Source: Bugula neritina
Lineage: Eukaryota; Animalia; Bryozoa
Direction: 5' to 3'
NCBI GenBank assembly: GCA_964035545.1
Contig: OZ037765.1
Coordinates: forward strand, 19,778,995-19,842,994
Length of the DNA: 64,000 nt
Numbering within the stretch: the stretch's first letter is position 1; each line of letters starts with the position of its first letter. Of the stretch, positions 8,001 through 32,746 are shown one piece after another. A model generated the notes under the pieces. It made no database searches, was not told the origin of the DNA, and was given only the letters and a program-made list of their open reading frames with translations. The translations under genes and the position numbers were made by a program.

Positions 8001-9444
8001 AAGTAATACAAGATGGCTGCTATGTCACCAAATTCTCCGAGGATGGCGAGTGGTACCGTAGCAAAGTGATAAACATTGACAACAGTGATGTCAAGGTAAG
8101 CTCTTACTATTAACAGCATAGACACTGTGTATATATAAGTATATGCAGGGCTCCTCCAGCAAGTGCATTATGGGATGAGATGCTTGTTGGGGTGAAATGG
8201 TAGCTGGGTACCAGCTTTTCTGAACTGATGGGAAATTAATATCTGGTACAAAAGGAACTTTTGTGGCAGATATATCAAAGCTAGTGTTGATTTCAATTAG
8301 GGCACCATTTTGTCACTTTTCTTAACTGTCCTTGCTTGAAATGCTGCAAAACTGAAAAATAAAATCCAAGTTTGACATTGATGGATGCAACATTCATGGA
8401 ATTCTGAGGCTGATTTTGTTTTCTTTTGTTGACAGTTTAATTTTGCTGTGTTGTCATTTTTAATTCGCCCTTAACCTGACAAATGGGTAATCTTTTATAC
8501 AAATCATAATTTGCTTGTGCATAAACTTGGTCATTTTGTTACGTCTTGGATTCTAGATTTTTACTAAGCAGCAAGCTAAAGTGTATACTGTCATTTGGTG
8601 AAATATTATCAAACTGGTGTAGTAGCTAAGACATGGTGACTATGTTTTTAGGTGTTCTTCTGTGACTATGGAAACACTGAGACCACCACTGTTGGCTGTT
8701 TAAGACAGCTGGTTCCTGCATTTTCCAAAATGCCTGCCCAAGCTCTGCGTTGCTCCCTCTTCGAGTGTAATGACCGTCTAAGTGGCAAAAGTTTGAAGCA
8801 GTTTCTAGCTAAATACTTGTATGCGTACATATCAGGTGAGTTGGAACCATACTTTTTTCCTGCTTTCTATAAAAAGTGGAAAACTGCTATATTAGTTTCA
8901 CCATTGCAGCACCAATATCTTGTAAAGATATTTTGAAAACATGGCACTTTATTTTCATTTGTTTTCAATTGTGGAGAATACATCTGATCGATAACCTATA
9001 ATGTCTGATGAATTTATTGCTAGAGTGTGTAAAGTGGTTAAAGCATTATAAGTTAGTCAAATTTCTGTGCTAATAGTTAATAATTTTTCTTCACTGGTTG
9101 TTTATGTAATGGACGTGGGGCATGTATGCTTCCCCTCGTCCATTAAGCACATAAACACTTACATGCGAAGCGTAACTGTATTATAGTCGTAGAAGTATTA
9201 TAACATTCCATTAGTCACGCTCGGGCTAACATTGTGAGACACCGCACTCTCTGCGGCAGTGGTGCAAGATGCTGCGCCACTGCTGTTGCGGTCCCCATCG
9301 CTGGAACACATTAGCCAATCTGAAGATAGCCTCCGGGCGCCCAAACTCATTCCATGCTTAGATGCCTTTCAAAGCTAACTACTGTGTAACTCTATATTGT
9401 GTGCTTTCCTACACTGATGTAACTTCTTGTAATTAGTGTTGTAA

Positions 9445-9475
<31 letters not shown>

Positions 9476-12400
9476 TGATCTTAAAACTACTCGGTTCTCT
9501 CTTATAACTTTGTAGAGAGGGAATGTTCTAACAGTGCAAACACACAACATAACCCACATTGGTCGTAGTCCTACAAACTACAATAGTTTACAATTAAACT
9601 GATCTAATTTAACGCGGGTGTCAATATTTCATTGAATTCAGTCGGTAGGCGTCAGACTAAATGCCATCAATTGACTGTTTTAGGTGAGATAAAGCACAGC
9701 AGTGCAGATTGCACTATTATGGAGATGTTTCACGAAGGCAAACTTCTCAGCTCTTCTGTTAAAGAGTTGTTACTGGCATGTCCACCATCCCTCAGGTTCA
9801 CCAGCAAGGAGCTGAGTCTAGGGGAGCTCCAAGGCTATCTGGTGTATGAAGTGAGTCAGAAGGAGTTTTACATACAACTTGAGTCAGATACTGACCTGTT
9901 GGCAGAAGTGAGTGAAAAGGTGTCAGCCCTGTCGACTAGCAGTAAGCAGTTGGTGAAGCCTGCAGTGGGTGAGGCATGTATTGCTAGATTCAGTGAGGAT
10001 GAGGTCTGGTACAGGGCAGAAATTACTCAGTGCTCATCTGACTCTTTAGATGTGAAGTTTGTAGACTTTGGTAACAGTAGCTGTGTAGTTGCTAGTGATG
10101 TGCTGGAGATATCGAAGGAGCTAGCTGATATCCCTACTCTGGCTATACGATGCTCTCTTATGTGTGAAGACAACTCCCGAAACCTCACTGACTGGGCCAC
10201 AGGTATGTTAAGTCAATATAGAGTCAAGTATTTTAGACTGTTTTTTTTGCTTAAAAGGAGGTTCCCCCTAGACACACTTTGCCGCACCGAAAGCCATAAC
10301 GTAAAATGTCGGCCATTTTTAATGTGTACGGGCTAAATTTCTATTGGGTACGATTTGTGACACCTCATTGGACATCTATGTCCAATGAATTGATGCGAAC
10401 GTCTTCCTGTCTAATAGGAGCCTGCCGCAACTTGCCTAAATCAAGCAGTGTTTGATCCTAACATACGCCAGCGCCGTACGGGAAGCTCGGACATTTGTAA
10501 AAATTGCTACTATTTTACGTTACAGCCTACGGTGCGGCAAAGTGTGTCTAGGGTGGTTAGCTTTACATCTAGCCTGTTGTTGTCAGGATATGATAACTTT
10601 AGAGAATAAATATTTTTGGAAATGTTAAATTGTAACATGCAATGGAAATAGAAATGCACTTAAATTTTTTTTGTTATTGTTTTCAGTTGGGTTGCTTTAA
10701 TCTAAAATCATTAAAAACGTTATTTTAGGCAATCTAAAATCTTATTCTATTTGTTTTGTAAAAGAGTCTGAAAGCCCCCAGTCTTCACTGGCAACGAGGA
10801 TGTGGAACAATTTATTCAAGAATTCAGTGACGTGGCAGAAGTCACTCAGTGGCCACCTCGTGTGGCCCTGTTGAAGTTGCGGATGTCATTGGCAGAGAAG
10901 GCCAAACCCTACGGGTTAGGACCCGATGTCAATGGCATCTTTGCAGCTTTGAGGACTCAGTTTGGCATCTCTCCCATAGATGCGCGAGTCTGCGTACAGG
11001 GGTTGCGGCGCGATCCGCGCACCTCCCTACAGGAGCATGCCGTCACGGCCAAGAAGTTGGCACAGATCGCATACAGCGACTTGTCACCTGCAACCGTGAG
11101 CGGTACACTTTTGACGCTTTTGTGCAGTCGGTAAATGACCTCGGTTTCCATCACCAGTTTCTGGCGAGGGAGTCGCGGCGGCCGAGGACACACTGCGCAA
11201 AGGTGAGGCCCACCTGTTGGCCACCCAACTACACAGGAGTCACGTGGGGTCCCGCCAGGTTGAAGCAGAGCTGGCAACAGCTCACAGCGAAGCCAAGGGG
11301 GCGACCCGCGTAGCTGCCGCCACCACCCAGTTGTCGACTGCCTCCAAGGTCGCGCATGTGACCGACATGGTGACGAAACTGGTGGAGGCGCTCACTCGGG
11401 CTCCAGCGGTTTAGCCCACTCACAGACCCTTGCGGTCACGAGCGAGACTGTCAAGGGAGCCGGCTGCCACATGTTGGGAGTGTGGTAGCCGCGGGCACCG
11501 CCGCAAGGAGTGCCCCTCAGTACGAAGGGAGTTAAACTCTCATGGCTCGCAGGAACTTCAGCCAGCTGCGGGTCGGAGATAAGACTTCCCTGCGGGGGAG
11601 CCGTCAGCAGTCCGTACGGTTGCAACGGACAACCCCGCAGGAGTGGCAGGTGCCACGACGGACAGGCAAGCCGTACGGCCAGCCTGCTACCTTCACCTTG
11701 CCACTCCAGAATAGCTTCGGCGAGTTGTGCGAGCCAGAGTCTGAGGGGGAACAGGACCTAGCGTCTGGTGGAATGCTTCCTCCCCCTCGAAGACCTGTCC
11801 GCAACCAACGAACACAACCCCAGCCTAAGCTCAAAGCGAGAGAGGTGTCCTCTGCAATGACCGAGCGCAATAGGAGAGTGTGGGTACAACTTTATGGTGT
11901 CAGCTACTTCTTACCAGGCAAGGTAGCCGGTATAGCTGTCACCTTCCTTCTGGATTCAGGGTGTACCACTAACCTTCTAAGCCGCCAGCTCTTTGACACC
12001 CTAAGCGCTAGAGACAAAGCTGGTCTGGAGCCATACGATGGGAAACACGGCTCGTTGGCGAACGGGTCGTGTATTCCCTTCTATGGTATAGTTGAGCTGG
12101 CAGGACGTGTCTGGGATCAAGTGATTCAGAAGACATTCATCATCAGCCAACTCACGGAGGATGCTATCCTTGGGATGCTATTCTTGAAGAGACACGAATG
12201 CCATATTGACTTTAGTAAGTCTGCGCTGGTTTTGGCTGACGGAAGCTCACCTGCGTCGACAAGTTTGGTCATCCATTTGTAGGGGGCGTACAGGTAGCAT
12301 GGGGCTGTACGATATCTGGACGTTCCCGCGCCACCATTCACTCCAGGGTGAACAGTAGTTGCTGTTGGTCTGGTCGGCCCCATGCCCCCAACACCCTGAG

Positions 12401-15400
12401 GCAACAGCTGGATTTTGGTGCTCACGGACCACTTAACTCGGTGGGCTGACGCCCTGGCAATCCCAGACGCGTCAGCTCCAATGTAATCATTAAGCCTAGG
12501 GCCACACGGTGCGTATTTTCGCATGCGAAAATTGAAATCACAAGTAGCAAAGGTGTCCACTGTGCGCGTTGAGAAAACCTTCGCACTTGTCGCTCTGCAT
12601 TTTCAACGCAAGTGCGAATCGTCTCTGTCGTCGTCACCTAATTGGCTGGTAGCTATTCAGCGAGCCCAATTTCTTTATTTAGTGCTATATTCCAGTAAAT
12701 TGCGTTTTATTGAAAGCGAGTGCGATTTAAAAATGAAAGCTTTATTTATCACGCATCACTGACGCTACAGTGGACACCTTTGCTACCCGTGATTTTAATT
12801 TTCGCATGCGAAAATACGCACAGTGTGGCCCTAGGCTAACTGTTGTGAATCTTTCTTACTTATGTATCACATTTCTTACTTGTGTATAATTATCTAAATA
12901 TAATTCTATCTTTCTATGACCAACTTGCTTGGTTTCTCATGCAACCACGCAGTGTAAATTCAGTAGCCGATATCATGCAATAACACCGATCTAGTAGTGC
13001 ACAAAACTACAACAATAATTCATTCATGCTGAGCTATAATAAAGTAATATGACAAGTCACTGGACACTCAATACACACAGGTGACATGAAATTCAAATTG
13101 CAATAATAATTTTAAATACTTCGAATCACTACAGTCACTGTGGCAGTTCTTGTCTTTATTTTTAATCACTTTGATGGTTAACCATAATTATTATCATAAT
13201 GCAAATATAGAACTAAAACCTGATGGCCTCAATTTTAATTCAAATTTATTTCAATTTCAGAACTCAAGATGATTAGTGGGAATATTCATATTGAAATTAT
13301 GATTATTTTATTTTCTAAATGTTTAGTCAAGATGTGAAACTAATATTAGATAATATTTATAATGACTAAAATATCAAAACGAAGTGCCGTTGATATTGGT
13401 ATTGCTTGACAATAAATTATTGTTACAATATGCACTAATTATTAATTTACTACAAACCGTCAAAAAAAACTAACAACTATGATTGCTCTGGTGATAATTC
13501 TTATAATCAATTGTTCATAAAGTAAGCTATTCTATGTATATCCTAACGTCCAATAGAAACATGAGAAAGGGCTTCTATAAGTAACCCCAAGCAATAAAAA
13601 CCCAAAGAACCAAAGCTATATTTGCTGAAAATTCTCGATAATTCTAAATATCGAATATCTTATCAGCAATAGTTTTTACTCCTTATTTTCTTCACTTCCA
13701 CTGGGCCACAACTACACACTCCAAGCTTGAATAGACCATGTAAAACTCAGCCAATCACCCAAGTGTACCAATTGAATTTCTCACCATGATAACATATAAA
13801 ATTTCTCAAGTTCAATTGCAAAATGCATGCTTCCAGAGAAGACATTTCTCTGGTGTACATTTGTTGGTGCAATACTAGGTCTGGTACTGTTGGCTTACCC
13901 CATATACTATGCTTTTCCTTGTAGATTTGCTGACAGTGACTGTAGAAAAAGTAGTCAATACTAAAGCCGTTGTTTCTCTTCTGATGGGCAGTTTGCCTTT
14001 CATTTCTCCATCTCAAGATACAATCAGTTCCACTTCTGTGACTGCCACTTCAAACGCAGACAGTGTTGGACCATCTCCTTCCACCACCCGACCTTCTCTC
14101 AAGTTCACCAGCAAGGAGCTGAGTCTAGGGGAACTCCAAGGCTATCTGGTGTATGAAGTGAGTCAGAAGGAGTTTTACATACAACTTGAGTCAGATACTG
14201 ACCTGTTGGCAGATGTCAGTGAAAAGGTGTCAGCCCTGTCAGCTAGCAGTAAGCAGTTGGTGAATCCTGCTGTGGGTGAGGCATGTATTGCTAGATTCAG
14301 TGAGGATGAGGTCTGGTACAGGGCAGAGGTCACTCAGTGCTCATCTGACTCTTATGATGTGAAGTTTGTAGACTTTGGTAACAGTAGCTGTGTAGTTGCT
14401 AGTGATGTGCTGGAGATATCAAAGGAGCTATCTGATATCCCTACTCTGGCTATACGATGCTCTCTTGTGTGTGAAGACAACTCCCAAAACCTCACTGACT
14501 GGGCCACAGGTATGTTGAATTAATAAGAGTCAAGTATCTTGGGTGGTTTATTACATAAAAAGAGGTTAGCTTTACATCTAGCCTGTTGTCAGGAAAGGAT
14601 AATTTTAAATGATGACTATTTTTGGTAATGAGAAATTTTAAATTGTAACATACAATGGAAATTTAGAAATACACTTAAATGTTTTGTTATTGTTTTTAGT
14701 TGGGCTGCTTTAATCTAAAATCATTAACAACGTTATTTTAGGCAGTCTAAAATCTTATTCTAGTTGTTTTATAAAAGAGAGATTTTCTCAGGATAGATGG
14801 GCATATAATGCTTATAGGCACATTACATCTATCATTTTGACATTAGCAGAGCTGACTAATTACATTTATATAATGTTGCGATAAAAAATATCTTAAGCTA
14901 TCAATGCTTTTTGGAGTTGTGTGCCCATGCAAATTAATTATGACTTATGCACACAGCGTCTTCATTGTAGTTTGACTGACCTGTTAATGAAATTGTAGTC
15001 TAGCTCGGTGATTCTAGCATTAGAGAAATAATACTAATGGCTGGTAACTTTTATTAGGAGTTATTCTTACCTTGAAGCATAGGCTACTAACATAAAAAAT
15101 TAATAATATAACAAGTCACTGATCGCTTGAATAAACACAGGTAATATCAAATTCAAATTGATTAGATGATTATCAAAATCGTCATTACTGTCGCTATGGC
15201 AACTATTGTGTTTATTTCTGATCACTTTGATAGTCAAACATAATCATTATCATAATGCAAATAAAAAAACTCACAGCTTTGGTTTCAATTTTAATTTAAC
15301 ATTATTTCAAGTTCAAAACTCAAGATGATTAGTCTGAATATTCATGTTACAAAATTTTATGATTATTTTATTTTCTAAATTTTTAATTAGTCAGGATAAG

Positions 15401-18400
15401 AAACTAATGGATAATAATTATAATGGTTAAAATATCAAAGCAGAATGACATCGATATTAATGTTGCTTTAACAAATTATTACAATATATACTGTTTAATA
15501 ATTTACTACAAGGCGCTAAAAATAATTAATAAATACAATTGCCCCGAAGATAATCATTGTAATTGTTTATGGGTAAACTATTCTATATATAACCTAACAT
15601 CCTATGAAAACATGAGAAAGGGCTTCTAACAGTGACCCGAGCAACAAAAACCCAAACGAACCCAAGCTATCTTTACTTTAGCTGCTTCCAAATTATTAAT
15701 GAATGTCTCATCAGCAATGGTCTTTACTCATCATCATCTCCATTTTCACTGGGCCACAATTACATGCTCAATCTGATGCATTGAAAGCATACAATGTGAA
15801 AATGTGCTATAACATCAATGTAGTTGGATATATAACTCTACAGTTGTGTTTGAGTTGTAGCTAATATAATGTTGTAGATACATCATGAGTGTAACTTAAC
15901 GGTTCTGCTTTAAATTGGAATATTTGGGTAACGGCTGCGAAATCGTGTTAATAGGAGCTAGCTCTCTTTTCTTGTATAGATAATACAGTACTTCCTCCAC
16001 ATCTCACTAAACTGTGAGTCCGAAACCTCAATAGTAGAATACCAGGTTTAACTCGGACATCCGTTAAATTTGGCCATGGGTTCACGCCCTTTTCGTTACC
16101 TATGAAACTTTGCGGGAAAGGGATCCGTGAGCTACTGAGGGAACACTGTATGTTTCTGGTTGCCGTGATCATCAGAGGAATTTCTTTAGTGTAATGATGG
16201 TCTTGTACTTTTTTTAATATATCCTGTTTGCTCAATCAGATGCTATGCTTTTCCTTGCAGATTTGCTGACAGTGACTGTAGAACAAGTAGTCAATACTCA
16301 AGCCGTCGTTTCTCTTCTAATGGGCAGTTTGCCTTTCATTTCTCCATCTCAAGATACAATCAGTTCCACTTCTGTGACTGCCACTTCAAACGCAGACAGT
16401 GTTGGGCCATCTCCTTCCACCACCCGACCTTCTCTCAAGTTCACCAGCAAGGAGCTGAGTCTAGGGGAACTCCAAGGCTATCTGGTGTATGAAGTGAGTC
16501 AGAAGGAGTTTTACATACAACTTGAGTCAGATACTGACCTGTTGGCAGAAGTGAGTGAAAAGGTGTCAGCCCTGTCGACTAGCAGTAAGCAGTTGGTGAA
16601 GCCTGCAGTGGGTGAGGCATGTATTGCTAGATTCAGTGAGGATGAGGTCTGGTACAGGGCAGAGGTCACTCAGTGCTCATCTGACTCTTTAGATGTGAAG
16701 TTTGTAGACTTTGGTAACAGTAGCTGTGTAGTTGCTAGTGATGTGCTGGAGATATCAAAGGAACTAGCTGATATCCCTACTCTGGCTATACGATGCTCTC
16801 TTGTGTGTGAGGACAATTCCCAAAACCTCACTGACTGGGCTACAGGTATGCATATACTGTCTCTAAGCTGCCTGGTGTTTTGTAGCTTGTGTTGTCTCAA
16901 TTTGCCGACTTTCATATCAAATGTATTCTTACAGACATGATAACTATTGCTGTGGAAGAAGTTCAACAGAACACTATCTGTGTAACCCTGAGGGACCCCG
17001 ACGGAGCCCCCTTTTTGGCATCATCTCAAGACGTGAACCCGGTAACCCCTGAGCACTCCCATTCGTCACTCTCTTGTGTTTCCTCCAATTCCGTGCCAAC
17101 CCTTTCCAGCACCTCCAGTCCAGCCCGCAGCCAGCTTGTTTCTCTGCCTAAAAATAATATTCCACCAGGTATGTATACCTTCCTCCTGTACAGATGTGTG
17201 CGTTTAGCATAATGTAACTATCATTGGTAAAAATCGCATTCCTGTATCAGTACTAAGATTTTATAAAGGGTCTTCCTTCATGTGCACTGTGCAGCATTTG
17301 AGTTTCCGATTGCCTTAGCCTAGTGTGTGTGCATATTAAGTGCTGTCTGCTGTTCAGGTACGTACAAGGCCTACATCTCCCACATTGATGGTGCTGACAA
17401 CACTCTCTACGTGCAACTCAGTCAGAACAGTGAACTGCTGGACAACATAACTTCCTCTCTGGCTACCCTGGCACTGAATGCCGAGCCAGAGGTGTACAGT
17501 CCTGTTGGACAAGCCTGCGTCTGCAAATACTCAGCCGACAACTGCTTCTACAGGTACTGTTTCCTGTTGGTTTTCACGTCTCATCATTTCTGAATTAATT
17601 CCTTTATGCGAGAATAAAAATTTTTCATTGGTTTTTATAGAGCCATGGTCTCTGAGTTGCACAGTGAAAGGGGAACTAGCACTCTAGTCTATGTAGACTA
17701 TGGGACACGGGAAGAAGTGGTTAATAGCAGCGTTAAGGTGTTACCAGCTTCACTACGTCAGTACCCACCCGTGGCAATCAAATGTACAACAAGGCAGCCA
17801 TGTTTGACTGGTGTGTCAGCCGAACGCCTCGTTCAGCTCTTCAGCGGCAAAGAGTTGTCTGTTCAAATAGATGGTGCCGATGAGCCGTATAGCTTGACCG
17901 TCCTTGACCTTGATGCTGACGATCTCAAAGCTGCAGGTGATTAAACTCACCACCTATGCTTGTATACTCTCTATACCTGGTGGCTTGCATCCACTAACCA
18001 ACATTGCCACCAGAGTTTATGAATGCCAAAGATGTTTTTATGTTTCCTTTTCTTGCCTCCGTCATTCCCCATTTCCATAGTAATGTTGATTTTCTTTGTA
18101 CAAAACTTTGTGTTTTTCTGAGTATCTTTGGAAGGAGTTCCAATACTTGCATCATGCTGTTTATATGTTACCTGTGGACAAGAGTCTTCCTGAAACAATT
18201 AGAATAAAAGTATTTACAACCGTCACACATCTTTGCTCTTCCTATGTTGTCAGCCACTAAATATATACCTCGGATGGGGGCTTAACTAGATTTAGGTTCT
18301 TGACACTGTTATTCTTTTTCTTTTCTTTACAAAAACCCCTGTCTGCTCTGAATTCTTGTTAGTATAAACGATATTGTTTGCATGGCTGTGATATTCCTTT

Positions 18401-21400: not shown

Positions 21401-24400
21401 TACTTGTCAGATAAGGTATTCGCAGCTGATCAATTTCATCTTCAGTGTTTCATAGTTTATATAATTCACTATGCACCAAATTAAACCATAACCCTTGTGT
21501 TTTTAATATTTAAAGTATGTTTTTCCCTAATTCGTGGCTAAATGTAACTCGTAGTTATGTCTTAGTGGTTTTTGTGGTTTTAAAGGTGTCAGATATTTAT
21601 TTCATTTAGTCTAGATTGCATATCGCATCATTCAATTGAAGGTTATATAATACAGTCAGCACTCTTTCTGATTCATGCTAAAGGTTAGCGAGTTTGTACA
21701 GCGAGTATCTCCAGCCCTCCACCAACAAGTAGAGAGTATGGGCGACGATGGTGAAGAACTCTGCACGGCACAGGATGTTGTTGGCTATGTGTCTCAACTG
21801 ATACTCTCTGAGATCTCTCATAAACCTCCCCCTCTACCCCTGGTAGCTCGGGTGGTAGACAAGACCGTCATGTTGGCAGAGGTTTGTACTCACCAGTTTT
21901 TCAATGTCAGCCATATTCATCGGGTAGTAAATAGGTTAATAACTGTTGCGATTGACAGTAGCTAAGAAACTCATCTTCTGTTGTAGAAGATTTAGTTATT
22001 TATTTTTTATTATATTTATTTATTACAAGTATAATATTTACTAATAATATTTAATAATAATAAGTACAATAATTACTAATTTGCTATAAGTATAATATTT
22101 ACTAAATATAAATCTTTTGATAAATATACGTATTTATTATAATAAAATTTGTATTTAGTAAATTAGAAAATTTAGAAGTTTTAATTCTTTCACAAGTTTT
22201 CATTTTCTTGTTTTAAAGTTGTTTAGTGAAACCAGCCTAGCTGAATATGCATTTCAAACGGTTTTGTAACTGATTTAATAACAGCATTTACCTTCTAGCT
22301 TGAATTTTATTTACAGGCGCAGAATATTTTGGGATGTCTACTGGAGGAAGTTATGCGTATGAACTCGGAGATTGTGGAGAATATGTGTGAAGATGGTCTG
22401 GTAGCAATGGACAGTCTGATGAGGTCATACTCTGATGATGAGGTCATGCCGTCTGCTACTGTAAAACAAGTGGCTGCAGCTGTTGGTGATGAGGTGGTGC
22501 GTTTCGATTCGTCAGCCATTAATACAACTTGTGAGTCGGGCACTTCCATGGAGAGTTCACAACCAGAACGATCTTCTGTAGATGACACTTCATCTTTAGA
22601 ACTTACACCGGAAAAGCATCCTTCTGCAGGAAATACGCCTATGAAGCTGCCTACAGCAGAAACTAGTTCTTTATCCATAGAAACAAGAAGCTCTCTGTCC
22701 ACCACCAGCTCACTGCCAGATCCGGCAGTATTGGAACATGTGTCACGCAATTCACCATCATCTGTTGATGCATCTAAATCTGGTTCTTCTTTGTCAGATG
22801 CAATAGCCTTATCTGCGGAAATATCTGCACCGGATGGCTCGTGTACTGAACTGTTTGCTGATGACAAAGATGGAAACTGTGATAAGTTGTTGATTAGAAG
22901 AATTGAGCCGGAAGATCCAAGCGACGGGACCCAAAACACACAGCCTGGGGATGAGGTGCTGCCTGGAGTAGCGGCTATTAGGTTATCCGACAGTGAAGAT
23001 GACAAGGCTGAGATCTCTGGTACTCTTTCCGGCATGTCTCTTTCGGGTTTGTTTCTCTTCTCTCTTATATTGGAATAGTGTTGCCTAATTTATATTTGAT
23101 GTATACTTTTGGGGGAGAGGGAGCAGCCGTGGTCTAGGGGTTAGAGTGTTTGCCTAGTAAGCACGGAGTCATGGGTTCTAACCCCAGTAAAGGCCAGTGG
23201 TAATGGTAGGAAGAGCATCCAGTCATACTTGCTCCTGTGCCCCATCTGAATAAGTCCTCAGCCTGCTTTAAAAACCCTTTCCATCAAGGGTTTTCTCACT
23301 AGGATGGCGACTATAAACTTGCGCGAGTGAGTGAGTATACTTTTGGGGGAGGAATTGCTGGATTTATTGTAAGAGCAGAAGTGTCTGTAGTCACTCTCAG
23401 GAGCTGAACTAGCAGACCTGTACGTTGGAGAGTTGGCAATGGCTATCTGTAGTTCAGCTTCTGGTTGTAAATTGTGACCCTGTTGAATAAAATTATCTAC
23501 TTTTTTGTCAACTCTTGTGGGTTTATAGTGGACATTCCTGTGAGAACTCCTGATGTAAAGGGTTTTTTAATAGGGCTAAGGACCTTTTCACTATTGAAAT
23601 TACGACTGGATGCTCTTCCTAACATCACTAATGGCCTTTATTGAGAATCGAACCACTGACCTTCTATTTATTATGTCTGCTAATAGGAAATTCTAAATTT
23701 TCGTCGTATAAGTGTCAAATTCATTGCTTGCACATGTTTGCATTGTAGAAGTGGTGGGCTCAGCATAATCATATACTATTGTGTCTAATATGTACGTGTG
23801 TCTCATTTACCTGGACATCTCTTCATGTATTATTGTATTTGTTTATACTCTTATTTGTTAGCAAATGGTGATGATGTTAGTGTACTGTGCAATAATGACA
23901 CGGCAGAAGAACTGGTGACTGAGGGGGAAGGTGATAACATAACGGAGGTAGAGTCAGCTGTGTCTGCTGACTCTACAGAGGGTAAACTGGAGGGTATGGA
24001 GAAGACCGACTCGGTCAGCATGGATGTTGCTGCCGAGGTTTCGGCTGAAGAATGTGAAGGAGACCCTGATGGAGACAAGGAGGACACTGTTGAGGAATTT
24101 CCCGCTAATAGTGAATCTGAGACTGGTGTAGCAGGAGAACCTGGGGCTCAGGTTTGTGCATGTCATGTTACAGTTTAATAACTATTTCTATTAGGACAAC
24201 ATTGCTATAGCTCAGGGTTTCCAGTCTAATATACTTATAAGTACCCCTAGTGAGTATAGAGGTACGTTAGACAAATTGTATGTTACTTTAGTTTACATTA
24301 CCTTGGGCAACAGTTTGTACCAATATTTTTTCTGCTTTTATTTTATAGACTTTTTTCTAGTTCAAACAGTATTAAATAAAACCTGCAGAAAATTCTGGGC

Positions 24401-27368: not shown

Positions 27369-30300
27369 ATGGATTGGTTTTTAGGTGATTTCACTTCATA
27401 TATCACACTTATAAGCTGTCTATTTGCAGTGTATTGTATCTATAAATGGAAGAAATATCAAGGTAATCCTCTTTATTCCTTACCAGGTGAGTGTATATTT
27501 TATTTTACTAAACAGGGTTTTTTTTAGTAAACGCTTGTCCACTAATATATTATAATGTACATAAACATATCTATGTTCGTTTATATGTAAGTTCTCCGCC
27601 TTTATTTAAGGGCCGGGTTTTTCACTGCCCATATTTGGACACATTCACTTGCTGAGAGGCAAACCTCACTTGGCCCTGTCAAACTTGCAAGAGAAGTATG
27701 GGGATGTGTTCAAGCTGCAGCTCGGTCCTCACACTGCTGTAGTAGTCGCTGGCAAAGACACAATTAAAGAGTTTTGTTCTCTTGCTACAGTGGCCGGCAG
27801 ACCCCACAGGTTTTTTAACAGCTGGACTAAACATGAGCGGTTTGTGTGTATTCTTATATATAGATTGTAGAGTACAATTTGTGTACTATGTTGTGTGTAT
27901 GGCCGTTTATATTTTTGCCAAAAATATTCTATATTCTTATTAATGACAGGCTGTAATTTTAAATGTGCCTTGCAATTAATAATGCTTCTTTCTATGGTTC
28001 GTTTTGCTTTATATAATATTTTCAACACATTAATGTCAGCTAATGTAAGATAATAATATTGAGTAAATTACTAACCTTTTTACAGAACTTGGGCTATAGA
28101 GCCGCTAGTGCAAATGTCTATTTTATTAGGTTTCTTTCAAACTAAACTCTAACATGCATATCAACCTACTTCAACATTTAGTCGGTCAGATTTTCACTAG
28201 CAGCAGTTGCAGTGATGAAGGTTATACTTTAATAAAAACAATCATGATGTGCAGTTATACACCTGAAAAATTAAAATTAGGAGCAGACAACATTTGCCGG
28301 TCAGCACAGCTAACATCTGTTCTACCAAAAGTTACATGTCAGAAAATGTGAAATATAGATAAAGCATGATGTAAATTAATGTTCATACAATTTGTCTGCA
28401 AATATTAAGGCAATATATTATTTTTCAAAACTATGGTGAGTTGTTAGTCTCCTTGAAAACCTTTATTACCAGTTTTTCTCACAGGATTCAAACTTTAAGC
28501 CACACTCTGTTTCACTAAAACTCCTATATTTTTTCTGCCGATAGTCTGATAGTTTTATGCAGTGAGATGAGCCAAGTACTTTCCATGATTACAGGTATTT
28601 TGCGTTTGGCCACAGCAAGGCTTGCCTCAAATACCGAAAAGCAGCTGTGAAGTCAATAGCTTCTCTCTCCAGCTCCAAAGTAGCAGAAGTCTGTCAGGAA
28701 GCTGTAGAGGACCTGGTAGAGAATTTCTGTATGTATAGCAGTACTATACTGCATCTGTTATTACTAAGTTTTAGCTGCTGTTGTTTTATAGTATGTTTGA
28801 TCATGAGGTAAATAGTACCAGTACAATGTTTGACATTCGCTTTGAATCCATCAGAAGAGTTGAATATGTGAAGTATGCTAGAACAAAACAAGAGTAGTTA
28901 TGTGTGAGTTCTTCAGAATTGTCAAAATTATTATCTGTGTTAGTAATATGGGCAGTTTTAGTAAATTATCAATAAGTTGGAATTCAAGTTTGTAATAGTT
29001 TGTTGAGGAAAATGTAGAATCCTTCACTTCGATGTTATTGGTGGATGGAAGTTACTATTTTCATATTGATAATTCAGAAATGATTTCCCAACATAATTTA
29101 GTGCAGAGTTATGGCTATTTAATAAGGTAGTTGTGTCATTGAATTGCTATTGGCAATCATTTCAAAATTTGTATTTGTATCCATACTATGCAATGTATTT
29201 ATTTTCAACTGTTTTTTGCAATTTTGTTCCTCCAACCTGTTTTTTATCATCACAAGTTTTGAAGCGTTTCACCACAAAAATATGTATTTTTTTTGTTTCA
29301 CCTATGTTCTATAAGCTGTACATATCATTTTTTATAAAAAAAAAAGACTGTAGTTCTATAAAAGTTCCATTGTCTATATGCTTTGTATGATACTTATTTG
29401 CTTTGACATAATATGCTGTTATTTATTTCTCTGCCTAGTTTGTTGTACTTTTAGGTTCATATTTAAGTATGTTACTATTGTGACCTGCTTTAATATTAAT
29501 ATTGATTAGGTAAAACAGAAAATGGTACACTTCAAATAGAGCAAGCCAGATCCAGTGTGGCCGACATTTCCTACTATTTATGTTTTGGAGAAAAGAAAAA
29601 AGCGAGGAACGGTTCCGAGTTTCAAAAGGTCATAGACAGCCTGAAGAACGTTCTGTCGTTTGCTTCAGTAGCCGGAGTTGCTGATTTATTCCCCTGGGTT
29701 CTATACTTGCCCAGTTTCCGACAAAGATACAGCAAGTAAGCGGTAGTCTGTTGACATTTCTTCTTCTCCAGTAAAGGTTGCCCCTTCTCTTGGCTTATTA
29801 AACATTTAGGCTATCTTTGCTGTTGAGTCTTTAAATTTTTTATGAAGCGAAACAGAAAGTAATGTGTCACTGTAAACAAGTAAATTCATAAATGTATTAA
29901 TAGTGTTCTGGTCATTAGTAAACTTGTAAACATGTTATAACCACCAGGTGCTTGCTTGTGAGTAACACACTCATACTAAGAGTAGTTGATTCAACAATTG
30001 TCACATGTATCGCAAAATGAGTATGTATGCTAGTGTATAGCGTATGCTACCTTCAGCAGATTGCAGGCATGAAATGTATTGCTTTCTAAATAATTATACT
30101 CTATAATATAAAGTATATATATTATGGCTGTGACATCTAAATACAGTTTCTAATTTGGCCTCATCAATATATCATTGAGAATAATTTCAACTGCTAAGAC
30201 ATTAAAACTTTTTGCATGTACATAATATAGATTATGCTGATATGGCAATATAATAATATTTTTTAATCTGGTAGGTAATATAGCAATATAATATATATTG

Positions 30301-32746
30301 TATTATGGTAACATAGTGATGTATTATAACTTACAATAGCAATATATCATATTATTTTTAATAGTAATGTAGTAATATAGTATTTTGTATTGTAGTAATA
30401 TAGTAATATAATATATATAGTATAATGGTAACATATTATATACAGGGATGGTGACTATAAACTTGCGTGAGTTTTTTTATAGTAATGTATTATATAGTAT
30501 TATGGTTATATAGATTATTGTTTTTAAAATTCAAAGGTTTTCTCAAGCCCAGGATGATCTGGTACAATTGGTTAAAAACCAGGAGTTGCGACATCATAAA
30601 CTTGATGGACAAACACTGGATGGGAAAGAATTTGAAGACTTGTGTGACTTACTAAAGCGGAGTATTTCAGAAGATGAAGTTAAGGTTAGTCATATGTGAC
30701 TATGTGACAATACATGCATATAGTCAACCATGTGATCATAACTGCTATGAGTTTATTGATCTTGCTTGCTATTTTTAATTGAAGTCTGTAAATATGACTA
30801 GCAGAGTTTTTCATTGCCACAATTAAATTACATATACATATAAGTATTACATAGCTCCACACTCTTGCATAAGCTTCATGTTTCTAAATGATGTGAACAT
30901 TTTTATTTTTTCCAAATTCTCAATTATTGTGATTTGGTCATGTATCTCGTGTTTAGAAATTGATGGAAGATGACCAAAACATCGGCACTCCTTCTGAGCA
31001 GACTGGAATGCTGTTATTTGCTGGGTAAGGGTTACGTTTTGTATACCTTTACTTTAACTTTACTTTAACTACATACTAATATGCCTGTTACATTATTGTA
31101 TTCAACTAAATTTCTTTTTTGTAAGAAAATAAGCTAGCCGTTAAAGTCTAAATAATATTTAAATAGGTTTTTTTAGGCAGTTTTCTACATCATTATCATA
31201 GAACCTCTTGACAATGCAATACAACCTGGTGTTGAGTAGTTAGAGTAAATACCAATTTTTTTCACAATACAAACTTTTTAAAGGTTGAAGCCCTTTTCTT
31301 TAGACCTTAAAATCAGTTATTCACACTATGGCACTTAGTTGTGCTAGTACTCGTTCATATATATGTCTGGTATAAGGCTACATATAACAGCATGATGCTC
31401 ACAATGATACATTTTCAAACATGTTATAATTTCATTTCAATAGATGGGCACAAAGCATGTTTTACTGTTGAATATTATTTATCAACTAGTACAGGGGCAG
31501 CAAGTAAATTTATGAATTTCTACTTGTAGGTATGAGACAGTAGCAGTGTCGCTTTCCTGGGCTATACTACTGCTGGCTGAACATACAGATGCTCAGGAAA
31601 AAATATATGTTAGTCTGAGTACTGGGTCTAGTGAACTGTTAGAGGCTTTTATTCTGGAAACACTCAGGTACTTCAGTTTCAGAATTTTGGCATACAAGTT
31701 GGTCCTCGGAGTTCTTTTCTGAGGACAATTATAAGTATTGAATGTTGACTACTTCATCATCACAACATAAAAACTGACGCAAGTTTATCGTCACTATCCC
31801 TGTTAATAACTCCTGATGGAAATTTTTTTTAAAGCAAGCTAAGGACTTTTTTTAAATGAGTCACAGGAGCAATTATGACTGGATGCTCTTCCTAAAATCA
31901 CCAATGACCTTTGCTGGGGATCAAACCCACAACCTTGGCATCACCACCACAGATTTTAGTCTAATATAGCAAGAAGATTCTGATAGTTATCACAGTTTGA
32001 TTTACTCAAACCTAAAGAGACCAAGATATTTATGTGGCAGATTCAGTATGGCGTCACCCCTCTCCATGCCTCACATGACTACAGAGTCGTGCACAGTCAA
32101 CGGTTACTTGATACCAGCAGAGACACTAGTTTTGGTGAACCTGTGGTCTGGCAGCAGAGACAGCAGGATCTGGGGACCTGATGCTGACACTTTTCAGCCA
32201 TTTCGATTTCTATCTGGCTCTGACAGCAACCAAGTGAGTGCACATCACGGTTTTACTGACTACTAGTAGCACATGCAAGAAAGCTGACTTTTGGTAAAAC
32301 CAAAGCTTTGACAATCAATATAACAACTAACAAATGACCGAGAAATCCCATATGTTTACACCTTTGTAATATACCAAATAATTAATAGCATCCCAAATAA
32401 TTATTTTGCATTTAATATATTTTAGTTGTACAGTCGTACCAAATATAATAATATGTTATCTTCAATGACAGTAACCGCTTGTTACTAATATAGATTTGTT
32501 ACTGTAATTTTCTTACAGATAGATACTGCAATGGCGGATCAGTTGATAGCATTTGGAAGTGGTAGAAGACGGTGTGTTGGTGAACAATTGGCTAAGAATG
32601 AGTTACGTCTGCTACTGAGTGGACTAATTATGCGATGTCAAATATTATTAGCCAATAAAAATGAAGCAGTTGATTATTGGCCACTAAGTCAAGGCAGTAG
32701 AAATGTCCCACCAACTGTTGACTTGAAGTTTAAAAGGAGAGAATAG
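27369..32746 (+). CDS. Microsomal cytochrome P450, clan 2, CYP1-like; 9 exons, ~493 aa
   Basis: Exons: 27369-27486, 27611-27839, 28595-28728, 29510-29735, 30537-30684, 30957-31024, 31530-31667, 32041-32233, 32519-32746 (1482 nt, phases consistent). N-terminal anchor, KWKK, PGPGFSLP hinge; I-helix FAGYET; K-helix ETLR; PFRF; heme motif FGSGRRRCVGE. Confidence 0.92.
29243..29328. repeat. Dispersed repeat: inverted copy of 26898-26984
   Basis: TTTATCATCACAAGTTTTGAAGC...ATAAGCTGTACATATCAT matches the reverse complement of 26898-26984 with few changes. Confidence 0.85.
30442..30472 (+). mobile_element. 3'-end fragment of the tRNA-SINE family
   Basis: ACAGGGATGGTGACTATAAACTTGCGTGAGT matches the 3' end of the 23118 SINE. 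Confidence 0.7.
31772..31940 (-). mobile_element. tRNA-SINE family copy in P450 intron 7
   Basis: The reverse complement contains the B-box region, AGGAAGAGCATCCAGTCATAATTGCTCCTGTG, and GTGACGATAAACTTGCGTC. Confidence 0.8.

Follow-up and report, generated by a model that had tools for sequence, protein, structure and literature searches.

The 64,000-nucleotide (nt) stretch of the genome of the bryozoan Bugula neritina analyzed here (hereafter the window; contig OZ037765.1, positions 19,778,995 to 19,842,994 of the forward strand) contains a gene that, to judge from its sequence, would encode a nine-domain, Tudor/TDRD6-like scaffold of the germ-granule type. Within this gene lie three long and nearly identical exons (exons 13, 14 and 15, the cassettes), which probably go back to an old tandem exon duplication whose copies have been homogenised by gene conversion, so that the phase symmetry of these exons would have been inherited and not selected for splicing. 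The original prediction made for this region had read the same symmetry as a hint of splice tuning, with exons 14 and 15 as optional units through which the number of Tudor domains in the protein could be set. Phase symmetry, however, is an automatic by-product of tandem duplication: tandem copies inherit equal phases and only in-frame copies survive, and for this reason the symmetry is no sign of splicing regulation.

Direct reading of the sequence confirmed the lengths predicted for exons 13 to 16 (519, 585, 585 and 234 nt), all of them divisible by three, as well as their phase 1-1, which means that the first two bases of each exon finish a codon and its last base begins another one (Table 1). 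Such symmetry is expected of an alternatively spliced cassette exon, but many constitutive exons show it as well. The borders, marked here by a slash, read ttttag/G and CAG/gtatgt for exon 13, ccttgtag/A and CAG/gtatgt for exon 14, ccttgcag/A and CAG/gtatgc for exon 15, and cttacag/A and CAG/gtatgt for exon 16. Phase 1 also applies to the exon 12 donor (8835) and the exon 17 acceptor (17358), which makes a series of five consecutive phase-1 introns. The peptide that opens exons 14 and 15 is present as originally quoted and is homologous to the opening of exon 16, with 12 identities and 18 positives over 32 residues (E = 0.007 in a single comparison); the Asp encoded by the split codon is also common to the openings of exons 14, 15 and 16, and the hairpin of exon 16 is 38% identical to the one of exons 14 and 15.

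Table 1. Exons and introns of the cassette region (coordinates of the window)
Feature	Coordinates	Strand	Content
Exon 12	8652..8835	+	Second half of Tudor core 4 and following helix; its phase 1 end precedes the terminal hairpin of domain 4; profile positions 98-149
Exon 13	9684..10202	+	519 nt, phase 1-1; hairpin that ends domain 4, short linker, Tudor core 5
Intron 13	10203..13924	+	Two segments homologous to intron 14; inserted mobile-element remnants
Exon 14	13925..14509	+	585 nt, phase 1-1; codons 1-20 give a hairpin and about codons 23-46 a disordered linker, followed by Tudor core 6
Intron 14	14510..16260	+	14564-14779 and 15104-15764, partners of the intron 13 segments
Exon 15	16261..16845	+	585 nt, phase 1-1; layout as in exon 14; Tudor core 7
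Intron 15	16846..16934	+	89 nt; not homologous to intron 13 or 14
Exon 16	16935..17168	+	234 nt, phase 1-1; diverged hairpin, Ser/Pro-rich linker, first residues of domain 8
Exons 17, 18	17358-17553, 17641-17936	+	Tudor domain 8; its own helix and terminal hairpin within exon 18

The cassette occurs in the genome in three copies, all of them at this locus. Over 419 nt, the three long exons show 95.5-96.9% identity, with differences at 13-19 of the 419 positions (3-4.5%), and exons 14 and 15 differ at 18 of their 585 nt; in exon 13, the part homologous to exons 14 and 15 starts abruptly within the exon, at position 9784, and spans 9784-10202. Bases that tell the copies apart include G at 10179 in exon 13 against A at 14486 and 16822, T at 16841 in exon 15 against C at 10198 and 14505, and A at 13948 in exon 14 against C at 16284 in exon 15. 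As the three long exons are copies of each other, their shared phase and length reflect one event and not three. Intron sequence was duplicated as well: the segment 13045-13716 of intron 13 has as its sole partner in the genome the segment 15104-15764 of intron 14, upstream of exon 15 (the single partner was seen for 13126-13716), and 154 of the 652 aligned sites of this pair are substituted. Such a divergence of the co-duplicated upstream intron (23.6%) indicates that the duplication is old, whereas the synonymous sites of exons 14 and 15 differ at only 10 of 139 positions (7.2%; Fisher p = 3e-6 against the intron). Downstream of the exons, the segments 10555-10766 of intron 13 and 14564-14779 of intron 14 show 8.7% substitutions, while the similarity upstream of the acceptors ends about 24 nt from the exon. 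The copy-specific differences are clustered (11 runs; runs test p = 0.035). Altogether, adjacent homologous exons are found next to a co-duplicated intron, with the exons more alike than the intron flank, which is the pattern of concerted evolution, and the sequence comparison points to gene conversion as the homogenising process. Synonymous divergence among the cassette cores amounts to 0.072-0.107 and non-synonymous divergence to 0.012-0.031, and the resulting ratios (0.12-0.32) indicate that the copies are under purifying selection.

Each of the exons 13, 14 and 15 contains one match to the Pfam TUDOR family (PF00567; E 4e-25 to 9e-25), which covers profile positions 11-119/121. A scan of the window with a profile built from 600 extended Tudor (eTud) domains of database relatives located nine Tudor domains on the + strand, between positions 2402 and 20398, and with this count the 7, 8 or 9 domains foreseen for the skipping of both, one or none of exons 14 and 15 are arithmetically right. 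The gene is thus laid out in the manner of a scaffold, as an array of many tandem eTud domains accompanied by no other catalytic domain, and its C-terminal exon of 259 residues (22299-23075) matched no Pfam family. The names given to the closest proteins in the database are tudor-like, TDRD6 and TDRD15, although none of the 2931 matches of an exhaustive protein search exceeded 38% identity; no bryozoan orthologue was found in either protein library, and a word search with exon 14 returned no protein of 107-340 residues, that is, no transcript-derived fragments. Among solved structures, the best relatives by sequence are the eTud domains of Drosophila Tudor (4Q5Y, 3NTH) and TDRD1.

The aromatic cage, made of four aromatic residues and an Asn (F/Y/F/F/N), is intact in all three cassettes, as F124, Y131, F147, F150 and N152 in exons 14 and 15 and as F102, Y109, F125, F128 and N130 in exon 13, and these residues align with the cage columns of eTud11 (3NTH) with identical spacing, the numbering of the fly cage being that of Liu et al. 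2010. The ligand would probably be symmetric dimethylarginine on PIWI-type partners. On the other hand, domain 8 reads Asp-Tyr-Gly-Thr (17690-17715, exon 18) where the family has Asp-Tyr-Gly-Asn, and this domain, with its cage Asn replaced, may deviate from the usual mode of dimethylarginine binding. The domains also differ in how introns divide them. Only domains 5-7 have their N-terminal strands and the entire barrel within one exon; in domains 1, 2, 4 and 8 the match to the profile is interrupted within the barrel (positions 84-99), so that an intron is implied at this point, and domains 3 and 9 either are divided at other places or were matched incompletely. The cassette ancestor may have lost the barrel-internal intron.

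The second aspect of the cassettes is that their exon frame appears shifted against the structural domain, a reading for which there is good support. Solved eTud domains continue after the Cys-x-Leu strand with a helix and further strands, whereas each cassette exon ends 14 residues past this strand. An AlphaFold2 (AF2) model of exon 14 alone, obtained from an alignment of 141 rows (140 of them equivalent hairpin-to-core stretches from relatives), reached a mean confidence (predicted local distance difference test, pLDDT) of 84 and a predicted template modelling score (pTM) of 0.78, as compared to a pLDDT of 31 for the single sequence. Along the model, confidence is 85-90 in the hairpin (residues 1-20), below 50 in the disordered Ser/Thr/Pro linker (23-46), above 90 in the core, with the barrel strands above 95, and 50-59 in the tail (181-194). 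The strands with a staphylococcal nuclease-like (SN-like) fold and the helix ahead of the barrel occupy residues 66-111 of the model and align with the N-terminal part of both eTud11 and the third Tudor domain (TD3) of TDRD1 (Z 14.0-14.6). However, residues 66-194 of the model find their match in just the first 125 or so residues of eTud11 (chain 2346-2470; Z 14, root mean square deviation 1.2-1.9), and in the structure comparison about 45 C-terminal residues of the solved eTud fold have no counterpart in the exon. At the two edges of the array of cassettes, exon 12 stops ahead of the hairpin of domain 4 and exon 18 holds the hairpin that belongs to domain 8 itself. The hairpin that opens each exon is therefore assigned to the preceding core, because only then do the nine cores and the nine hairpins of the gene pair one-to-one. 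The original prediction had described each cassette as the last strands of the preceding domain, a Ser/Thr linker and the next Tudor core; the succession of hairpin, linker and core was recovered as described, while docking on the preceding core would follow from this counting and from a model of a single exon, not of the joined protein. In addition, the stretch that links the Cys-x-Leu strand to the following hairpin (14467-14509 and its equivalents in exons 13 and 15) measures about 15 residues, versus about 26, including a helix, in the consensus of 600 relatives, which indicates that the helix is shortened in the cassettes.

From these data, a likely pathway for the origin of the array can be outlined. 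A phase-1 intron would have been located just ahead of the last beta-hairpin of an eTud domain, and one exon-sized unit would have been tandemly duplicated to give domains 5, 6 and 7. Each of the resulting exons would begin with the hairpin of the domain before it, pass through a flexible linker, and go on with the SN-like N-terminal strands, the helix and the barrel of the domain after it. Gene conversion would then keep the exons, together with some 200-500 nt of downstream intron, 91-97% alike. The likeliest product would be one protein with all nine domains, translated from constitutively included exons, in which three near-identical readers of symmetric dimethylarginine would offer more sites for methylated PIWI-type partners.

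Several points weigh against this interpretation. Constitutive inclusion of exons 13-16 is assumed, part of the contrast between exons and intron could stem from selection at synonymous sites, and three copies without an outgroup do not reveal in which direction or when conversion took place. As for the offset, the opening peptides taken alone do fall in the expected register, but their profile scores are not above those of shuffled sequences (p 0.07-0.17), and docking was read from the confidence values of a model with a single exon, in which the hairpin is able to dock only in cis. The last point touches on the alternative that each exon encodes a self-contained, circularly permuted eTud domain, with its hairpin packed on the following core and no offset at all. 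The hairpin is indeed modelled confidently with only its own core present, and the core-to-hairpin link falls about 10 residues short of the family consensus; a permutation, however, would leave domain 4 without a hairpin and domain 8 with two, and in all solved eTud domains the hairpin follows the barrel, so that this arrangement seems very unlikely. Even more improbable is that haplotype copies, or a collapsed or expanded repeat, were laid in tandem by the assembly. Assemblers are prone to mishandle near-identical units of 585 nt, but the introns behind the units measure 3722, 1751 and 89 nt here and differ in their mobile-element insertions, the homologous intron segments have diverged to the extent given above, and the 5′ part of exon 13 is distinct from those of the other copies. 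The intron lengths, the insertions and this distinct 5′ part of exon 13 thus all but rule out a haplotype or assembly duplicate.

The possibility of a dial for the valency of the protein, either at the splicing or at the DNA level, deserves a closer comparison with the old, conversion-homogenised duplication favoured here. Regulated skipping of exons 14 and 15, as first proposed, would be feasible for the protein: every join of exon 13, 14 or 15 to exon 15 or 16 keeps the frame, as had been predicted, and the fold should almost surely be kept too, to judge from the cores of exons 13 and 15 (the latter being the native partner of the exon 16 hairpin), which differ by four conservative residues. 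Moreover, two residues set the hairpin of exon 14 apart from that of exon 15, which leaves all chimeric core-hairpin pairs near native. Nevertheless, the splice sites follow the consensus, with CAG/GTATG at all donors and good pyrimidine tracts at the acceptors, intron 15 is very short (89 nt), and descent accounts for the symmetry, which is common in any case, at 39-56% of human exon sets (PMC2592719). A search for intron-intron complementarity bracketing exon 14 or 15 gave nothing convincing, the only pairing across exon 14 being an AT-rich stretch of 23 nt with 83% complementarity. The amphioxus isoforms X1 and X3 (P0151 and P0152), the one named isoform pair checked in a relative, were considered as a precedent for a variable number of Tudor domains and rejected, as they differ by a linker of 357 residues and not by a domain. 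Splice-tuned valency is consequently regarded as unlikely. Somewhat likelier, though still doubtful, is a dial at the DNA level, in which unequal crossing-over would make the number of cassettes polymorphic among individuals or among sibling species of the B. neritina complex. A change in copy number is plausible because past recombination between the copies is evident, both from the contrast between exons (3-4.5%) and intron (23.6%) and from the clustered differences, and direct repeats of 419-585 nt lie 2.3-4.3 kilobases apart; conversion, on the other hand, is possible without crossing-over, and the proposal is based on one assembly. By either route, it is improbable that skipping of exon 14 or 15, or a cassette number differing among individuals, tunes granule assembly via the valency of one protein. 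A literature search on tandem exon duplication in Tudor genes and on Tudor valency found nothing.

Other elements were recognised in the introns and next to the gene. Intron 13 harbours, on the + strand, a GC-rich (0.51) retroelement remnant at 10772-12600, absent from the homologous intron 14, with a weak match to an aspartyl protease (PF13650; 24.2 bits versus a Pfam cut-off of 24.3, E 5.6e-05), and an inverted repeat of 76 nt with 92% complementarity is found at 12488-12842. The same intron contains a small insertion between inverted repeats of 56 nt (84% complementary) at 10266-10553, also absent from intron 14, which looks like a miniature inverted-repeat element, and a dispersed repeat of about 105 nt at 13728-13834, present in at least 40 copies on all chromosomes with 84-89% identity. 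Downstream of the Tudor gene, a cytochrome P450 gene occupies 27610-32743 of the + strand (PF00067; E 1.5e-15 and 1.5e-08 for two exons).

Multi-Tudor scaffolds build germ granules through many methylated partners bound at once, and how the number of their Tudor domains is set and evolves is, to our knowledge, poorly documented outside flies and vertebrates. The locus described here offers a snapshot of such a process, in which one shifted, exon-sized unit that would still fold in any copy number has been multiplied in tandem and, probably through conversion, kept uniform. The offset between exon and domain would explain why copies can be gained or lost without harm, and three near-identical readers in one chain provide a natural test case for redundancy versus valency. 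This is an ordinary repeat-expansion mechanism, and not evidence of a new regulatory principle. As a whole, the gene is of a known kind, a Tudor/TDRD6-like scaffold, and what makes it particular is the internal tandem triplication under apparent concerted evolution.

Among known systems, Drosophila Tudor, with its 11 Tud domains, resembles the Bugula gene in being an eTud array with no other enzymatic domain. Its eTud9-11 structures (3NTH/3NTI/3NTK, 4Q5W and 4Q5Y) include both the solved structure that matches best by sequence (E 1.8e-20) and a top structural match (Z 14), although identity to the cassettes is only about 26-27%, the helix between barrel and hairpin is shortened in Bugula, and a near-identical internal triplication has not been described in the fly protein. 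Nearly every domain tested of fly Tudor was found to be non-redundant, and its 11 domains were called the highest number known in one protein in a 2025 paper (PMC12261137). In the proteins of other invertebrates compared here (P0003, P0002 and P0151), 16-18 Tudor stretches were matched, with 16 full eTud matches in P0151 of amphioxus. The TDRD6, TDRD15 and tudor-like proteins of Tubulanus (P0001), Branchiostoma (P0002) and Lamellibrachia (P0154), the best database relatives, share the architecture of the Bugula gene, but they are at most 38% identical to it and have more domains, with up to 16-18 matched stretches.

The process itself has parallels outside the Tudor family. The kringle IV-2 repeats of LPA and the triplicate region of nebulin are also made of exon units that are phase-symmetric and in frame, each coding for a whole or a shifted domain repeat, and recombination keeps these units alike while their copy number varies at the DNA level, as has been documented. 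Their products are extracellular or sarcomeric, whereas the Bugula cassettes would be methylarginine readers, and variation in copy number is documented only for LPA and nebulin. Finally, in the 'velcro' closure of WD40 propellers and in spectrin repeats, the repeats of the sequence are offset from those of the structure. As in the Bugula cassette, the coding unit begins inside one structural unit and ends in the next, but the shift in Bugula comes from the position of an intron in a discrete domain of 180 residues rather than from a closed solenoid or propeller.

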